A DNA stretch of 64,000 nt from Chlorokybus atmophyticus (taxonomy: Eukaryota > Plantae > Mesostigma and Chlorokybus algae). Location: contig RHPI01002069.1 of assembly GCA_009103225.1 (NCBI GenBank), forward strand, positions 2,256,846 through 2,320,845, in the 5' to 3' direction. How positions within the stretch are numbered: position 1 is the stretch's first letter; each line of letters starts with the position of its first letter. The notes below the pieces were generated by a model, which was not told where the DNA came from, ran no database searches, and saw only the letters and a program-made list of their open reading frames with translations. Positions 1 to 46,608 of the stretch are shown here, piece by piece. The position numbers and the translations under genes are program-made.

Positions 1-70
1 TATACCAACAAGAGCAATGCCAGGACAAGCACACTGTCACCTGCACCGGTGCCGCTGTCAACCTGCTTAC

Positions 71-1970: not shown

Positions 1971-4371
1971 ATGGCTGGCGTGATCACGGACAAGCCCACA
2001 CACGGGCAGTGTTTATACGATGGCGAATGTTTCATGGGTTGCAACGAGTTTTATCCATCAGAGGTGACCTAATAAATCAGACTGGCAATAACCATAAAGA
2101 GAGTTGCTCAGACAGCATGTGTCGACAAACGCACGTCTCCTCTTGTTTCGCAGACAAATGATAGAATATGTGCCCTTTGTGAACACTATCGCTCTTTCCA
2201 CACGCCACTCGAGCCCCATAGAGACACATACGGTGCTTGTAACTACCGCAAAGGCTGCCCAAGAGGGTGAGGCCTCCATTTTGATATTGATATTCTGTTG
2301 CTGAAGAGAGTCCCGAGTGCTAACAGCAGCTGCATTGCACATGCTTGGCAGGTGTTTGGAGTTTCTGGAAGTGGCGACAGCGAGCGGTCCACCCTCCTGC
2401 GAGGCTTGTGGACATGCAAAGGGGTTTCACATGCGTCCTTCCAAAGACAGCCTCGTGCAAGTCGGTCTTGTCTCACCCACAGGTATATAATTCAATTAGA
2501 CATATGCATGATTGGTCTTGGCTTACATGTAGTGCACACATGCATGACAAGGGGCTTTGCATGAATGTCAGGTTGTCAGTGTATGTGCAAACCTTGACAC
2601 GCACAAGCAGCACGCAGACATGCACACACGCGCACATGCACACACATGCGTCGCAAGATGCACCCCCTCAGTCTTTGGCACCCTTGACATGCAGGATTGG
2701 CACAGCGGAGTACCTTTACGCTCCCGCATGCCATGGTGGCCGCACAGTATGCCCCGGTCCACGTCGCGTCCCACCATCATCAACAACAACATCACCAGGC
2801 ATATGCCGCCTCCACCCAGGTTATGCCAGCCGATGCCATTGACAAGGGCACCCCCGAACGCCAACGCCCGCTCACCATGTCTGAACACGTATGTCCCGTG
2901 TGTTGTTGTCGTTGTTTATTGTCGTTGCTGCTGCTGCTGCTGCTGTCATTGTTGCAAACGCGTGCGTGCGTGTGAGTGTGCAAACGTGTGCACACATGCA
3001 TGTGCGTATACATGCAAATAGAAGCTGTGGGACAGAGGCTGATAGTACTCCTAACACCAATGGCGCAGGTGCTTCTTCATCAAGCGGTAATCTTCCCACG
3101 CAGTCCCACTGAATGGCACCGTCTTGTCAATGAGGCAGCACAACGCATTGTTGTCAACCCTCCTGGCGGCTTCTTAAAGACAAGGAAAGATGGCATGATT
3201 GACAAAGGTGCATATACTTAGTCAAGTGTTGAAAGCCTTCAGAGTTGGGCGCTCTTTCGGTGCCAATAGCGTGCATCATTGATGTGCAGGGGAGTTGAGA
3301 AGGCTGGCGGAGAAAGAAGTGCGAGAGAACCACTTTTTCTTCAAGAGAGGGAAGTCGCGCGCGAAAGACGCAATGCATGAGATGCCGCAGGCATCGCTGC
3401 CTTCTAGCGTCGTAGATGTCAATGGTGCTGATGGACGCAAGCGCAAGGTACCGCCATTCGCATCAGTACCCAGTAAATGAGACAGTGCTCAACTGCTGTC
3501 ATCTATGCACGAGGGAATGTTGCAAGTGGAGACCTGTTGAGCTTCGGGTTCCAGCTTTTGACTGTGCAACTGCTTGACTTTTGCACCAGATCTGTAGTCG
3601 CTTCAATGGTAAATTTGTTTTACGGTATACAAATTCACAAGCAGAGAGTAAATTTCCCCCATATCAGGTGGTGTCGACAGTGCGGAGGCATGCTGAGATG
3701 GATGCGGTGCGCAACTTGATCGAGGCCAACCGCGCGCGTCACGCGGCGCTTCTGGCGGAGCTTCGCCTCGCGCGATCCCGCAATGACCCGGACATGAGCG
3801 TTAAGAAGCAGGCGGAAATGGAGGAGTGCTTGAGAGAGAATTTGCAACTCCAGGTTTGGCTATTGCTCTGCTTGTTGGTCACAGGCCTGCTATGCTGCTG
3901 GCATAGTTCCCATGGTGTGATACCGTAGTCTGTGTGGTGCAGATGAGGTTGCAGCAACTGAATCATGCAGAGGAACGATCGCAAAGGGCAAAGCAGCGAA
4001 GAACGCGGAAACGCGACGAGCATCGGCACAGTGGTCAGGTGAGCGCTGGTGATCACGCCATCCAGTGATTGTCTTCCTTTCTAGCTTTCTTTCTTCTGCT
4101 CGCAGTTGATTTTGCTAGAGTGTTTGGTTTCCTTTGGAGTCAAGGCTGGGTAAAAACAGTGGGAGAATCAGCTAGTGATGCTTTTCTTGCCGAGCAGGAC
4201 GTAGGTATGTCCGAGGAAGATGTGAGCGAGCACGCAATAGATGCGGCTGCACATCATCACCACGGGCTCGAGCAGCACGAGCAGCACCACGTGCACCACC
4301 ACGACCAGGCGTCGGGCGCAGCACTGTCACTGGGCATGCAGCCGCAAATGCATGACCTTGTACATCAGTAG
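1971..4371 (+). CDS. Uncharacterised 427-aa protein: two tandem Cys/His zinc-finger-like repeats, NAB NCD2-like segment, coiled coil, His-rich tail
   Basis: Nine exons (1971-2063, 2154-2266, 2352-2482, 2695-2888, 3069-3207, 3290-3447, 3668-3853, 3943-4038, 4198-4371). All introns are GT-AG, phases are consistent, and there are no internal stops over 1284 nt. Confidence 0.85.
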
Positions 4372-4579
4372 TGTAAATAAACCGAGCATGAGTGGCCAGT
4401 GATAGCTAACAGTGGTTGTTATTTATTGTACTGTGGTTTGCTTAGGGACGGCAGCAGGGACATCTCCGAGTTTTGTGTTGAAAAGCATATGCAAAGGAGG
4501 CGGATACCCAGTAAATCACAGCAGCAGGTGCTACTCGCCAGTTGCCTGTTTCTGACTATGTAACTTAAGAGGNNNNNNN

Positions 4580-22800: not shown

Positions 22801-25113
22801 TTGCGCGCGCACACGCCAAAAAAGCATGCATGCTCACGCACACACAGACACAGATACACAGATACACAGGTACACTTGCACGCAGGTGCGCGCACACACA
22901 AAATCGCACACAACAGGCATGCAGGTGAGCACATATCCAACCGCACGCACACACGCACGCACGCGCACGCGCGCACACCCACGCGTACCTGTTGTTGCGC
23001 ACGTCTAGTATCTCCAAGCTCGGACACGACTCCGCCAGTCCATCAAGTGTGGTGATCGCGTTGCCACTTGCGTACAGCTCCTGCGATGCGATCAATAGCA
23101 ACACACGTTCACGTGTCACCACACGTGTCACCACACACACGACCATGTGAACAAGTGTGAACAAGTGTGTACTTGCCGTCAGCATGGGGAGGACAGGCAG
23201 CCCTTGCAGGGACGTAAGCCGGTTGTCTTCAACATAAATAATCTACGGAATGTAGTCAGTACACCGCACGCGAACACACGCACACTGCACTATGTGTCAC
23301 TTACGTCCAATGAAGCTATGGAAGGCAGTGTGGACAGCGTGGCGAGTCGGTTGCGAGAGAGCTGAAGCTCCTGAAGCTTGGTGCATTTCCCGACACTCTG
23401 CAAAACAGCAGAAGCAGTAGTGGAGTAGTGATTCAGTCGATCGAGGAGAGTGAATCGATCGTAAATGAATGAATGAATGAATGACTAAATGATTGAATGA
23501 ATGAACGAATCGGTGGATGATTGATGAAGCATTCAATCAACCACATACACATGAGCTAGTGACTAAGTGATTGATTGGATGAGTGAATACTTCTGAGCGA
23601 ATGTTTGTACGAGTGAGTGAGTGTGTATGTATCTTTCACCTCAACAGAAGTCAGCTGGTTGCTGCTCAAGTCCAGCTCTTCAAGCAATGTCAGACCCTCA
23701 AAAGCCTGTTTGCATGATACCACCAAGGAAGTTGTTGTGTGATACAGCAAGTACAGCAACAACATGAGGAGTTTCATGTTATTGTTATTGTTGTTGTTGT
23801 TGTTTCACACAAGCAGTGCTGGCGAAAGATACACACACGCATACCCTTGGGTGCAAGGACTTGATGCCGTTGCGACTGAGATTGAGCGAAGTCAGCGACG
23901 TCAAACGCGAAAGGCGAGACACGCCAGTCAACCTGCAACAAATAGGTTGTGTGTACTGCGTGCATGTGCATGCGTGCGTGCGTACGTGGGTTACCGTGCG
24001 TGTGTACGCATGTGCGTGCGCATGTGTCCGTGTGTGTGCGCTCGCGTGCGTGTGTGTGAATCTTAATGAACCACCATGATGGCATTGACACTTGCAACTC
24101 TACTTGCACACCTGTTGCCGTCCAATCGGAGGTGTTTGAGGCTGCGGAGGTTGTCCAGCCCCTCAATCTTCTCTATGAGGTTGTCGTGAAGGAGAAGCGT
24201 CGTAAGGCAGGACAGCCTACAAAGTGATATGAGGATAAAGTATCAACAAAAAGTCAAACGTAGGTATATTCTAGCAAAATCTTACCCCACATCAATCATC
24301 TATCTGTCAAGGCCATGTCATGTGTATTCTTTGGTCCAAGATATTGCGTTACACACCTTTCAAGGCCTGAGATGTATTGGATGGAGTTTCCGTACAGCTT
24401 CAGCTCTCTCAAATCCCGCAGACTGCTTAAACTGCCACACACCACAACATGACAGAAAACGATGTGACAATCTGTTGCAAAGCCAACATCGATTGTGCCT
24501 ATTGCGTGTGTAACGTCGCCATAACCTTACCCAGCTAATGAAGTCAGCTTGTTGAAGGACAAGTCCAGGCTGCGAAGCCGCGTGCACTGTGTGATGAAAA
24601 TGAGAAAAGGGGGAAGCCTCATGTTGGTATGTGCATTTGGTGTGTCTACGCGCAGTTGTCGTGTTTACGTGCAGTTGTCGTGTTTACGTGCAGTTGATGT
24701 GTCGGCACGCGCATGTGGGTGTATGAGTTAAAGAGCTGCTTGCAATGCTTACTTGCTCGAGGGAGGTTATGTGGGTTAGACCGCGGTTGTGCAAGTCCAT
24801 GACGTACGCGTCGCGCGGGTTCTCGCCTTGCGCGCCAAGCCACTGAAACCAGAGGCATAACACCATGAGGATGGATGAGTGGGAGTTATTTAAATCGTGC
24901 TCTACATAACGCTGTGCATGACATTTGATGAGCAAACTGGTTGTGCTGACAATGGTATGTATGTGTGCATGCGCCTATGTACATTCGCTAGTATATATGC
25001 GCACGCTTATGCCCGCGCACACACACGTTCCTTTCTCCTCTCACCAGCATGTCTTCCGTGACCAGTGTGTCATCCTCGCCCGCCTGTTCCATCTGTCCAC
25101 CTCCTCCATTCAT
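19883..25113 (-). CDS. SDS22-like leucine-rich-repeat protein (about 11-12 LRRs plus LRR cap) with a long S/T/P-rich tail; possibly ciliary or centrosomal
   Basis: Successive exons each encode about one LRR (LDLSFNKL, LKLYGNSI, LLLHDNLI, LRLDGNRL, LNLSRNGI, LDLSSNQL, LQLSRNRL, LYASGNAI, LDVRNNRL, LSIAGNP). The tail has RPKTPMSRP..RPGTP..RPLSART and GYKSFRLP. One GC-AG intron (donor at 23176). Confidence 0.85.
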
Positions 25114-25746
25114 CCCCAAACTCACTCACCCTGCAATCCCCCTAACCCCACATCACCACACCTCTATCACCACCCTCTCAGCCAACCGCCAACTACCACA
25201 AGCACACATACTTACAACACTTGCTCAGCCTATATACACACATCAGTGGCAACGCACACGTGTGTATGTGTCATGTTGTGCTCAGCTGCGCTTAAGCAGA
25301 CACATTCACACAATCAGCCAAGCCCAACAAACGAGTTTGACAGGTTGCTGTATACGACATACGTGTGAGTCTGTGTGTTCTTTTCTCTCCTCTCCCCCCG
25401 CCCAAGCACGTTACAGGCAAGGTGTGCCTTAGTAGGATTATTGCTCGCACGCACACAGTGATTATGTTGAGGATGCCAGCTGGCAGTTGTTTCTTTGCTG
25501 GCAGTTGTTTCTTTGCTTGTGAGGAGCGACTGGCCTTAACGCCCTAACATCTCTCAACGCTGATCGCTTCGCGCCTAACGCGCGCACGTGACTTTTGTGT
25601 TGTGGCGAAAGCTCCCGCTTAACGGCGATAGCTTTACCGGCTGCATTCTCGTAATACTATGCAGAAACTACCGTATTTTGTCGGATACCCCCTTTCCCCC
25701 CTCCCTGCGAAAATGAATTGGGGGGGGGGGGGGTAATCCTCAGCTC

Positions 25747-27360
25747 NNNNNNNNNNNNNNNNNNNNNNNNNNNNNNNNNNNNNNNNNNNNNNNNNNNNNN
25801 NNNNNNNNNNNNNNNNNNNNNNNNNNNNNNNNNNNNNNNNNNNNNNNNNNNNNNNNNNNNNNNNNNNNNNNNNNNNNNNNNNNNNNNNNNNNNNNNNNNN
25901 NNNNNNNNNNNNNNNNNNNNNNNNNNNNNNNNNNNNNNNNNNNNNNNNNNNNNNNNNNNNNNNNNNNNNNNNNNNNNNNNNNNNNNNNNNNNNNNNNNNN
26001 NNNNNNNNNNNNNNNNNNNNNNNNNNNNNNNNNNNNNNNNNNNNNNNNNNNNNNNNNNNNNNNNNNNNNNNNNNNNNNNNNNNNNNNNNNNNNNNNNNNN
26101 NNNNNNNNNNNNNNNNNNNNNNNNNNNNNNNNNNNNNNNNNNNNNNNNGGTATTTGATAAGTGCAGAGATGTGCATATCTCCACACATGTTTGCAGCAAT
26201 CTCATGTAAAGTCATACGACATCACATAAATAAAATAGTAGCGTATTAAAACTTATTGTTTAACATAACATGCAAATACCGTGTACATAAATGTTAAATT
26301 GCCCTTGCTGCCCTTATAAGCATAAGATTAATACATATATACGCCAGAGTTGCATGTGAATTTTTATAACCATATACTTTGACAAAATGCGAAAGCAGAG
26401 GAATGTTGGTAATGCTGCGAATGCCAGTAAAATTTGACTTGCGCTTTTACAAGAAGCTTGTCGAATGGTTGTGCAACATTTAATGCATTAAAAAGGGAAC
26501 ATTAATGCCATACTTAATTGTGCTAAGTTTGCAACGCATGAAAATGTAACGAGAACAAATATAATTATCAACTTTCAATCGTCAAATTCACTGCGTACGA
26601 TATATCTGTATATACGTATGCCTTTGAAATCTGTCAATCACAAAATTATGCGACGCAATCACATAAGCATGGTATTGGTATGAACGAATCATAATTGGTT
26701 TCTTATACTGATAATCAGCGACTCACACGGTGGCACCACATGGTTTGATCAATTCTATATACAACCTTGCAACATTTCATAATAATAATGATGTCTTTCA
26801 ACCTTCATGAACCGCCATCAAATGATAAATAATGTCCACATGCATGGTAAGTCAAAGTTTTGCATCCAATAAGTCGAATCAACACAAATGAACACTTGTA
26901 AATATGCAAGGCAATTATACACAATATAGGACTTGCTTACCATCAAGAAATGGACTCATATGTCTTGGACAAGAGTAACATCACAAATGTGATGGTTATG
27001 ATCCCCTCCCGCCTCCCCCCNNNNNNNNNNNNNNNNNNNNNNNNNNNNNNNNNNNNNNNNNNNNNNNNNNNNNNNNNNNNNNNNNNNNNNNNNNNNNNNN
27101 NNNNNNNNNNNNNNNNNNNNNNNNNNNNNNNNNNNNNNNNNNNNNNNNNNNNNNNNNNNNNNNNNNNNNNNNNNNNNNNNNNNNNNNNNNNNNNNNNNNN
27201 NNNNNNNNNNNNNNNNNNNNNNNNNNNNNNNNNNNNNNNNNNNNNNNNNNNNNNNNNNNNNNNNNNNNNNNNNNNNNNNNNNNNNNNNNNNNNNNNNNNN
27301 NNNNNNNNNNNNNNNNNNNNNNNNNNNNNNNNNNNNNNNNNNNNNNNNNNNNNNNNNNNN
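25747..27360. other. Two assembly gaps (25747-26149 and 27021-27360) enclosing an AT-rich, ORF-poor segment (26150-27020), with G/C homopolymer runs beside the gaps
   Basis: N runs are seen directly. The enclosed segment is visibly much more AT-rich than the neighbouring genes. Confidence 0.9.
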
Positions 27361-27733
27361 CCCTCCTTCCAAGTATATATTAATGCCTGCTGTTTGTTAT
27401 GCGCATTGTCTTACAGCGCACCTGCTGTGCATTACCACTGTTATAAGGAAACACTACCTTCATGATACCGCTTCACCAATGAACCCATAGATGCAAATCA
27501 CTGCCCTGTCCTAACTTCCGCACTAGCACAAACACACGGCAGCTTATCACGCGTTGCCCCTTGTTTACAATGCAAGCTGGCTTGCAACTTTCATCGTTCA
27601 CAATGTCATTGTTACCATCGCAAGCACACAGAAATCACAAGTCCACGAGTAGTGGACGCGACTCCGGTCACTAGCATAGCGCTTTGCGCCTGTCGCCGAA
27701 AAAATGATATCCTCATCTCTCATCTTCTCATAA

Positions 27734-30509
<2,776 letters not shown>

Positions 30510-36674: not shown

Positions 36675-39600
36675 CTATGCCTGCACAGCCGGAGTAGAAG
36701 GCCTTTCGGCAACCGTCACGGCCGATTGTTGCTTGGCTGACACAGACGGTGCATGATTCTCAGATTGTGCAGCTGCTTCAACAGGTGCTTCGTCTTTGCT
36801 GCTGCTGCTATTGCTGGTATTGCTAGCGGTCATGCCTGAAGCAGCAGCTGCAGGCATGTCCGCAGGCGCTACATCTGACACTTGTTTGGCTGAAACAGCT
36901 GCCGGCTGCTTTTCAGCTTGTGCGGAACCTTCAACGTGCGTGTCGCCGTTGCTGTTGCTGCTGCTAGTGCTAGTGGCAGTCATACCCACAGCCTGCATGG
37001 CCTGTTCATTGCCATCAACCGGGCATGACGGTCCCTCCAACGCAGCTGCTTTTGCTACCTGCGGGGCCTTATTGAACTCAGGTGCAGTGGCAAACGTGTC
37101 AAGCACTGCATTGGCTGCCGCTGCCGCTGCCGCTGCTGCCGCGGCCTTTGCACCAGGCTTGGCTGAGCTGATGACACCTTCAATCTTCTCTCCCAACGTT
37201 GGGGGCTTCTTGGCGGGTGGCGGTTTGGGGCTATCACTATAGGCGGACTGTTTAGCGGCTGGTGGTATGGGTGATGAGCCCTCCCTGGTGGGAGGCCTTG
37301 ATGACGCCGAAGGCTCGGGAGATGAGCCATTTGCACTGGAAGGTTTTGATGAGGGAGATGAGGTGGGTGCTGGCGTTGCAGCCGCAGCACCAGCACTGGT
37401 CCCTATTGAAGTCTTTGGAGCTGCGGCTGATGACGATGGCGCTGGAGGCTCTGGAGATGAACCGCTTGCACTGGAAGGCCTTGTGAGAGATGGAGTGGAT
37501 GGTGGCATTCCCAACGCTGTACCATTGTTGGTCCCGTTTACACTAGGTGCAACTGAGGGGCCGGGCCTGGTAGTCTCTGATGCACCAGATACAAAATCAG
37601 GAACTGTGCCGGGACTCCCTTTAGCTGCATATACTGCATGGTCCACTTCATGCCCATTCACATCTCTCAATTCATCTGCATTCGATGGCGAGGTGAACTC
37701 TTCTGACCCAGGTTCCAACACAGTTGCCATAACGGTTGGAGCAGGCGTGATAGGCCGCATGTCTGGTGAAGAAGGCCGATCGTACTCATAACCAGACTCC
37801 AGCAACAAAGCGCCCTCTGACCACTGCCCAGCACGCTGCAGGACAGGGCAAGCTCAACAAGTGATATGCATGCTCTAAACTTCACGAGCGCGAGTACAAG
37901 AGAACGGGTGTGAGGCACACTTACCGTGCCAGGTGTGGGTCCACGAGCGGCAAACCCAGATGGCATGTACGCATCCTCAAATCGTTCGAACGACCGCACT
38001 GGAGTGGCAAGACGACCGCCATGACGACCAATAATGTCGATCAGGGACAAAATTAGGTCTTCTTTAATGGCAAAAAATTCGTCGATGTGCTTGGTGGTAA
38101 CGTGCACTGACACCATTATCTGCACAGACAGAGTTATGAGCGGATAAGCAAACACAGCTGATGTTGTGCTTGCCATACCCGCAGGGAGGTGGCTGTGACC
38201 CCATGAAAGAAGCAACGCCGATGAAGCGACTCGTGCTCTAGTTTCGGATGCTGTTTGAGAAACTTGCGCATATCGCGCACCATAGCCTGCAAAGCCAAAA
38301 GCGTAAGTGAGGATGCAACGAAAGAATGCGCACAACCACCAGCATAACTGCAGACCTCACCTTAATCTTGGGCCCATCAGCATGGCGGACTTCAAGAAAC
38401 TCCATTACCCGCCAATGTCGTTTCCGAGAATAATTGAGGACGGTGCTGGAACTGAAAACTGCATTGGGTACATATACAGGCTCCTGACCCAGGGATCGCA
38501 GCCTCGTGAGGTACCAGCCCACCTCCTGTTAACAGGTATGGACAATTGCAATAAGCTGACTGACTGCAAGGTATAATACTTCTTATCATGTTGACAGCAA
38601 AGCGGCAATAGACCACTATTGCTGGCGACATGTCCCAGTAGTAAGCAAAAGTTCAATCTGTACTGACCTCCACATTGCCTTCGCATATGGACGACTGCTT
38701 CGACATGACTGCCACCCAATCACCAACCCCGAAGGGTTGCGTAAGATACAGCATGAGTCCAGAAAAGCAGTTGCTGATGATCTGCATGAAGGCAAGTCAG
38801 CACATTACTTATTGCAAATGAACCACTTCAGCTTGCAGTTGCGTACCTCTTTGCCAGCCAGACCGAGTGCCAAACCTCCAATTCCTCCAACAGTAAGCAA
38901 AGACCGTGAAGACACACCAAGCACGCTGCCCAGTGTTACTTCAACGGCATTTGCACCAGCCACAAGTATTACTAGAATGCTGAAGAGCTGCCCAAAGAAC
39001 CCTGCTGTGGCTTTGGTTGTTTTATCTACATCCTTTCGACTAGCAAACTTCGCCAACAGTCGATTCTTCACACTGCAACAGCAGCATGTCACGTTATTGT
39101 TATACCAAGGTGGGGCTGAAAGGGCTGCTTGCATGCAAACACCTTGAACTCTGAAACTGCATGCCACAACCGTCACCTGATCGCTATGTATGTGGCGGTG
39201 GCTAATGCAGCCAAAGAGCGCGCCCTAGACGTAAAATGAAGTATGTGACGGCCAGCCTGTTGAAGATCGATGTTATGTACCCCAACAAAGGACAACGTAC
39301 TCTACCGCTAAGGAAAACAACCTACTTGCTAAGCACCACTACTGCAATCGGACTTGAGTCGACGACCACAAGCCAGTGCACCAAATCAGCGAAAACGTAC
39401 CCGAGCAAGCCTGCTTGGCACATGTGCGTCAAGAAGGAACTGTTCAGCAGCCGTGCTTCCGGCAAGCAGCACCCCTAGGCATGCCAGCGGCAGCACCAAG
39501 TGCTCCACAGCCCAAGGCAAGCCTGGTTTGGCTTGTGCGCTCTGCCAGACGAGCAACTATAATGCTAATTCAAAATACTCGCGTGCAGAGATAGCAGCAA

Positions 39601-40417: not shown

Positions 40418-41359
40418 AAGCTACAAAACTGGGTGGTGACTGACGGGATTTGAGGTTGATAACGCCCAATGGGGCTGTGCACATCAGACTCATCGCGCTC
40501 CAGCACAACTTGGTTAAGCAAGATGTTCCTACAGCGCGTTTTATACAGCAGTTAGGCCATGGAACAACAATACAGACCAATCCGAGACAAACAAGATCTT
40601 GCAGACAATGCGCTCTTGACAATTGTCAACTTTTGATCAACGACGAGTAACAATTGTTGCACAGCGTTTCCAACCAAACTGTCAACTGTGTCAGTACTTG
40701 AACAAGGCTTGTTGCTTGGTATTGCCCACGTTCTCTTACCGACGCAGAGTGTTGTAAAACAATGTAGTTAGTTGTGGCATAGTCAGGCAACGATTATAGA
40801 ACAAGCACTATATTGAAAGGCCTTTTGTAAAACCCATGCCATGTGCTATCTAACGGTGCAGAAAACACAGGACTGTGGTCTAGTTGCGTTCGCTGACTCA
40901 AACATGGCCGTCTACCTATCAGCTGATCCAACTTAACATTACTTGAAAACTCCATCTGCATATTTCTCCTGAATGTGTAAATTTGCGTTCATGCTGCGTA
41001 CTGCATCCACATTATTGCAATATGGCTCCTGCTTACCGCAGACCTAAGGTACCGCCTGGCTCAACCCATGGGTAGAGAATAGAACCCAATCCGCCCACGA
41101 AGAAGCTGCATACGCTCAACCTCCAGCACCGCTAGGCCACCAGGCTACCAACTAAGCAAGCAGCTTCCCTGTCCGCTCAGAAAACAGTGCTGAACAGCAT
41201 AGCTATAGCTACACAGAACAGATTTCCGAGTATGCTGACTCTCACAGCCGCAAGGTTAGGCAGTCGTCCGCACACACACAGCGTACAGCGTTGTCGTCGA
41301 CGTCGTCGTCGTTGGCGGCGGCAGGGGCAGTGATGCTGACGCTAGCAGCAGGGGTGCTC

Positions 41360-46428: not shown

Positions 46429-46608
46429 GAGACAAACAAGATCTTGCAGACAATGCGCTCTTGACAATTGTCAACTTTTGATCAACGACGAGTAACAATT
46501 GTTGCACAGCGTTTCCAACCAAACTGTCAACTGTGTCAGTACTTGAACAAGGCTTGTTGCTTGGTATTGCCCACGTTCTCTTACCGACGCAGAGTGTTGT
46601 AAAACAAT
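46429..46608 (+). repeat. 180-bp exact copy of 40584-40763 ending at an N; probable assembly artefact
   Basis: Identical sequence in the same orientation with a constant offset of 5845, terminating at the N at 46609. Confidence 0.85.

Follow-up and report, generated by a model that had tools for sequence, protein, structure and literature searches.

The 64,000-nt stretch of the Chlorokybus atmophyticus genome analysed here (contig RHPI01002069.1; referred to below as the window, with positions counted from its first letter) contains close to its start a gene of nine exons that encodes a 427-residue protein with two zinc fingers in tandem. As judged from profile comparison, the two fingers are divergent relatives of the dimerisation finger that land plants have in their ZF-HD (zinc finger-homeodomain) proteins, and no homeodomain accompanies them. 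The reading that we favour, with somewhat more belief than doubt, is that this lineage-specific Chlorokybus gene encodes a probably nuclear, oligomerising tandem ZF-HD-finger protein that would act as a transcriptional adaptor or modulator. Its proposed architecture starts with the two divergent ZF-HD-type fingers; a His/Gln linker predicted to be disordered leads from them to a small three-helix domain of basic character, and a long coiled coil and an acidic tail rich in His complete the protein (Table 1).

The exon chain was rebuilt from the raw sequence and occupies positions 1971-4371 of the + strand, stop codon included. All eight introns are of the GT-AG type and each acceptor is CAG. 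The joined coding sequence (CDS) of 1284 nt has its terminal stop codon as the only one, and retention of any of the eight introns leads to an in-frame stop after 1-28 codons. The GC content was 0.56 in the exons (CDS) versus 0.48 in the introns, and codon usage did not clearly set frame 0 apart from frame 1. The translation agreed letter for letter with the public C. atmophyticus protein EukProt EP00898 P001553 (jgi Chlat1 2399 Chrsp17S02656), a model that carries no functional name. An earlier reading of this DNA, made from the letters alone (the sequence-only reading), had proposed a spliced gene here with a 427-residue protein; the protein was recovered in our rebuilding and is identical to the public model, and all the sequences it quoted are present in the 427-residue frame. 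Immediately 3' of the stop codon lies a putative polyadenylation signal consisting of TGTAA and AATAAA, motifs that serve as poly(A) signals in the green lineage. Shortly 5' of the start codon we observed two out-of-frame ATGs (at 1958 and 1964) and, with its last letter at 1930, a TTGCAG that resembles an acceptor (interval 1928-1970), which suggest an intron in the 5' untranslated region or a short upstream open reading frame (ORF). The gene is intact, intron-rich and real-looking.

The two Cys/His repeats are, from their alignment, homologous to each other. The repeat-versus-repeat alignment scored 66, compared with 23.8 +/- 4.8 for shuffled sequences (0 of 2000 shuffles scored as high), and 14 positions were invariant between the fingers, including T, G, Y, five Cys, GC.EF, H and FH. 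When each finger was taken separately, ZF-HD_dimer (PF04770) was the sole Pfam family reported, with 16.4 bits for finger 1 (E 0.012, profile positions 18-51 of 55) and 14.6 bits for finger 2 (E 0.041; E 0.074 with exon 3 alone, the one exon to match this family when exons were searched singly); both matches fell within profile positions 18-53, and the whole protein scored 15.6 bits. We then compared the fingers with a reference profile of plant domains. The source of this profile was 120 plant contigs from JGI metagenomes, found with a degenerate DNA pattern for the CAACGCHRNFH block, from which 71 distinct plant finger pieces were cut out; 27 non-redundant pieces were aligned, and 27 of 27 passed the PF04770 threshold. 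On such metagenome contigs, which are host-plant DNA in plant-associated samples, intact ZF-HD genes of land plants, intronless and with both finger and homeodomain, were numerous.

The alignment of the two Chlorokybus fingers matched the 27-domain plant profile in hhalign with a probability of 94.2% (P 1.1e-7); the 33 aligned columns begin with DGCxEF and extend through FH. Each finger also matched the plant profile on its own, finger 1 with 91.5% (P 8.8e-7) and finger 2 with 85.8% (P 5.3e-6). Recomputed locally, the match scored 39.7, compared with 10.2 +/- 2.4 (maximum 21.8) in 300 column shuffles, which preserve the Cys content of the two-finger alignment. The GCNEF of finger 1 and the GCLEF of finger 2 fall on the invariant G31, C32, E34 and F35 columns of the plant profile, that is, on the conserved DGCxEF core of region Ia-2. 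Because the match to the plant profile lies far above that of the shuffles, the fingers are, on sequence grounds, related to the ZF-HD dimerisation finger of plants, though divergent. The proposal of a duplicated ZF-HD-like finger made in the sequence-only reading is thus borne out by a shuffle-controlled comparison with the 27 verified domains of PF04770.

The function of the ZF-HD finger in land plants is protein-protein dimerisation. The signature of the finger consists of five Cys and three His, with a C in region Ia-1, an H and a C in region Ia-2, and three C and two H in region Ib (order C, C, C, H, H), and finger-only MIF proteins regulate the homeodomain-bearing ZHD proteins via heterodimers (PMC10415114). 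Across 45 green algae 31 ZF-HD genes were counted, and proteins consisting of the ZF-dimer only have been reported from bacteria, archaea, protists, fungi and animals (PMC10415114). The Chlorokybus fingers share with the plant PF04770 finger the GCxEF motif and a C-terminal CxxCx..H...FH block that aligns gap-free with CAACGCHRNFH. As in plant ZHD and MIF proteins, they are N-terminal and followed by a variable linker, and the protein resembles MIF in being without a homeodomain. The differences begin in region Ia-1 (Y.EC.KNH), which was left unaligned and where Chlorokybus has a shorter C-x5-C. In the Ib block the plant CxxCxCH is replaced by CxxCxH, the third Cys being His and the next His being Tyr or Ala, so that this alignment with plant fingers upholds the changed CxxCxH..FH pattern described earlier. 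Each Chlorokybus finger has five Cys and two His, whereas the family has five Cys and three His. Unlike plant ZF-HD proteins, the Chlorokybus protein carries two fingers in tandem and is encoded by an intron-rich gene with introns within both fingers. A MIF microprotein has about 100 residues and one finger only, whereas the Chlorokybus protein has 427 residues, two fingers, a coiled coil and additional ordered regions. The sequence-only reading had also proposed an undescribed family of regulators. Since fingers without a homeodomain have already been reported across kingdoms (PMC10415114), the finger part is not new in kind and this proposal has to be given up to that extent.

The RKRK cluster, the coiled coil (as long helix) and the His-rich tail, all named in the sequence-only reading, are present in the translation. 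The RKRK cluster, at the N-terminal end of the long helices, is a possible nuclear localisation signal judging by its composition. The two long helices were predicted with high confidence by AlphaFold2 (AF2) from the single sequence, and the model makes a coiled coil or helical hairpin probable for residues 272-367; in Pfam these helices gave coiled-coil-type matches only, all sub-threshold. A bZIP protein, in which a basic region precedes a coiled coil, was considered for this part and rejected, as there was no Pfam match and no N-x7-R signature. Among the last 57 residues 13 are His and 10 are acidic.

Table 1. Features of the Chlorokybus gene and its protein, with positions in the window (AF2, AlphaFold2; pLDDT, predicted local distance difference test)
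Feature	Residues	Position	Strand	Basis or remarks
Exons 1-9		1971-2063, 2154-2266, 2352-2482, 2695-2888, 3069-3207, 3290-3447, 3668-3853, 3943-4038, 4198-4371	+	
Finger 1	11-47	2001-2201	+	split by intron 1; C-x5-C-x3-C(GCNEF)-x12-C-x2-C-x-H-x4-H
Finger 2	57-95	2229-2430	+	split by intron 2; finger 1 pattern with GCLEF and 14-residue loop
His/Gln/Ala-rich linker	99-176	2440-2885	+	composition; pLDDT ~30, predicted disordered; no Pfam match
Central basic segment	174-240	2877-3339	+	predicted helices 174-181, 190-206, 223-239; spans introns 4 and 5
Two long helices	272-313, 317-367	3433-4029	+	AF2 pLDDT 90-98 from single sequence
RKRK basic cluster	273-276	3436-3447	+	sequence
KQRRTRKR basic cluster	355-362	3991-4014	+	end of long helices
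Acidic His-rich C-terminal tail	379-427	4222-4368	+	composition
Putative polyadenylation signal (TGTAA + AATAAA)		4372-4381	+	immediately 3' of stop codon

Searches for relatives returned the protein itself. HMMER with exon 5, which holds one half of the central segment, against 1.84e9 representative proteins found the own protein and four multi-repeat proteins, the latter judged spurious since their matches were sums of short hits. A word-based search of 5.8e9 proteins, which sees only proteins of 235-747 residues that share several exact words, gave the own protein only, whether the whole protein, residues 1-100 or residues 168-262 were used. Degenerate-pattern scans with the finger alignment found nothing in prokaryote genomes and metagenomes, and no paralogue was present within the 64,000-nt window. 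A tblastn search with exon 1 gave a short match at 25482-25526 (E 0.003). At the sensitivity reached, where relatives below ~40% identity would escape detection, the protein holds as an orphan or lineage-specific one on the sequence comparisons made, in agreement with the term orphan used for it earlier.

The central segment is the part of the protein for which the alternatives had to be weighed most closely. It is present, as the sequence-only reading had it, and lies at residues 179-250; its coordinates are 3072-3366 and not the 3069-3370 given there. Over residues 177-250 it has 16 Lys and Arg versus 9 Asp and Glu. The domain-only AF2 model of the segment had a mean pLDDT of 64.6 and a predicted template modelling (pTM) score of 0.46, the other four models had pLDDT values of 45-51, and in the full-length model confidence was low across the segment. 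A sequence search of solved structures gave no match for exon 5; with exon 6 or the finger region as query it gave only chance matches (E at least 0.04). With the domain model as the query, Foldseek found no match in the PDB at E<=0.001, and an Atlas shape search, with this weak model, returned generic helical matches with query-normalised TM scores of at most 0.45. The sole Pfam signal in the segment came from residues 217-229, whose similarity is confined to the latter half of EF-hand_5 (E 0.02-0.05). We rejected an EF-hand here, as K and R occupy loop positions 1 and 3 and Pro and Gly abound in what would have to be the entering helix.

One alternative is that this segment represents a novel or very degenerate homeodomain-like DNA-binding domain, which would make the protein a ZHD-type transcription factor. 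Plant ZHD proteins have the same order of finger, variable linker and basic three-helix domain. The segment is basic and predicted to be three-helical, and its end, FFFKRGKSRAK, loosely recalls by eye the end of a recognition helix. We nevertheless consider this alternative unlikely. The Pfam homeodomain gave no match at E<=10 with the whole protein or its sub-segments. A profile of plant ZHD homeodomains (51 extracted from the same plant contigs, 25 non-redundant used) was compared in hhalign with residues 160-262 and reached a probability of 0.2% and a P of 0.31, on which ground a ZHD homeodomain was rejected. A wide VIA-align fold search with the domain model gave a best Z of 4.0 for a generic helical match and no homeodomain or helix-turn-helix (HTH) match above noise. 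By these comparisons there is no homeodomain in the protein, as the sequence-only reading had stated. A different identity for the segment was suggested in that reading, namely a resemblance to the NCD2 domain of animal NAB proteins and hence an NCD2 fold older than animals. Residues ~174-250 would then be a true, very distant homologue of NCD2, and the protein a NAB-like co-repressor recruited via its ZF-HD fingers. In an ESM-Atlas feature search the NCD2 cluster (PF04905 in 96% of members) was indeed nearest, and the nearest named cluster, for residues 168-262 and 176-252 (169-170 of 256 features shared; 8-9 of the 10 best named matches in the NCD2 family), with a score of 0.80, which shuffled proteins reach a third of the time and which is at noise level, values below 0.9 being a lead only. 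The motifs of animal NAB1/NAB2 quoted in the sequence-only reading (the short motifs VNEAA and ELxxLAxxxxRE) run collinear with the segment, with a score of 56, compared with 43.1 +/- 4.6 for shuffled sequences, with 57 of 5000 shuffles reaching 56; this corresponds to P ~0.01 before correction for a family picked post hoc from thousands, and the three quoted fragments are unverified. The language-model neighbour and the quoted motifs probably pick up one and the same pair of short motifs and are thus not independent. Against these signs, Pfam NCD2 (PF04905) gave no match at E<=10 with the whole protein or with eleven sub-segments (exons 5 and 6 and nine further overlapping ones), a negative that leaves room for very weak similarity because the HMMER filters hide matches with P above ~1e-5. 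NCD1 had no Pfam match either, the N-terminus being occupied by the finger pair. No NCD2 structure was among the results of the solved-structure searches, by sequence or by fold, and the Atlas shape search, with its weak model, lists no NCD2 cluster. In the searches of 1.84e9 and 5.8e9 proteins no other non-animal protein bearing the segment appeared, and the taxon is wholly different from that of NAB1/NAB2. Since there is neither a profile match nor, with the weak domain model, a fold match to NCD2, and the motif result does not change this, an origin of the NCD2 fold before animals is not a justified claim, and the resemblance itself was not supported by the HMMER and Foldseek comparisons. 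The NCD2 link is a weak, unproven lead. We regard a NAB-like co-repressor as very improbable, and give equally little credence to the wider idea of a genuine pre-metazoan NCD2 relative attached to plant-type ZF-HD fingers, a module recruited independently in a streptophyte alga. If the lead were true, a domain so far regarded as confined to animals would go back much further than they do.

The favoured reading, an oligomerising tandem ZF-HD-finger protein, can be put as a sequence of steps. The fingers, by analogy with those of land-plant ZF-HD proteins, would bind zinc and pair, either within the molecule as a pseudo-dimer or with ZF-HD-type fingers of other Chlorokybus proteins. We propose this dimerising role because ZF-HD fingers dimerise and MIF and ZHD proteins heterodimerise in land plants (PMC10415114). 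The predicted coiled coil would make the protein multimeric, the basic clusters may take it into the nucleus, and the resulting complex would serve transcription as an adaptor or modulator and not as a homeodomain DNA binder. Several observations weigh against this reading. Both fingers score below the Pfam gathering threshold for PF04770, which is 27 bits, and it is the significant profile-profile match, not the direct HMMER comparison, by which the earlier ZF-HD assignment stands. Only the C-terminal two-thirds of the ZF-HD_dimer domain aligns with the fingers, and each of them lacks one ligand of the eight in the signature. The central domain makes up a fifth of the ordered protein, is assigned to no family and could carry the real activity. 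We have no homologue from which purifying selection could be read, and a contig encoding the exact 427-residue product is not on record.

The last two points also bear on the possibility that annotation produced an artefactual gene model, or that the gene is unexpressed and decaying, in which case the 427-residue protein would not be made. The lack of any relative in the searches, the exact product being without a contig on record, the two out-of-frame ATGs just 5' of the start and the poor separation of frame 0 from frame 1 in codon usage are what such a gene might present. We hold this explanation to be highly doubtful. The eight canonical GT..CAG introns join the exons into an open frame of 1284 nt free of frame errors, and exon GC exceeds intron GC. 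Both fingers, which retain all their shared Cys and His together with GCxEF, have a match in an external family, and the stop codon is immediately followed by a signal of poly(A) type. The same exon chain is found in an independent public annotation, which counts against an artefact.

Elsewhere in the window, an ORF-sized exon at 28111-28698 on the - strand encodes a piece of a WDR5-type WD40 propeller (Pfam Beta-prop_WDR5 E 8.8e-63, WD40 E 3.9e-25) and is an ordinary conserved neighbour gene. An ORF at 37670-38335, also on the - strand, gave a sub-threshold match to the C-terminal region of the mechanosensitive channel MSL2/3 (PF24956, E 9e-5, 23 bits; cut-off 29). The block 24001-28000 is AT-rich, with a GC content of 0.374 versus ~0.50-0.55 in the rest of the window, and ORFs overlap on both strands around 25634-26215. 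An exact direct repeat of 180 nt is present at 40584-40763 and 46429-46608, the copies lying 5845 bases apart; either an inserted element with the copies as its ends or a duplication introduced in the assembly could account for it.

The public gene model, the finger family and the occurrence of finger-only proteins across kingdoms were known; new are the tandem, ligand-shifted finger variant and the architecture in which it stands. The protein adds to the ZF-HD-finger architectures one from Chlorokybus, which is among the earliest-branching streptophytes, with tandem fingers and a coiled coil and without a homeodomain. The replacement of CxxCxCH by CxxCxH shows where in the finger changes can occur. 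The architecture lends support to the idea of a finger that mediated protein interactions as a free module before it came to stand beside the homeodomain in land plants.

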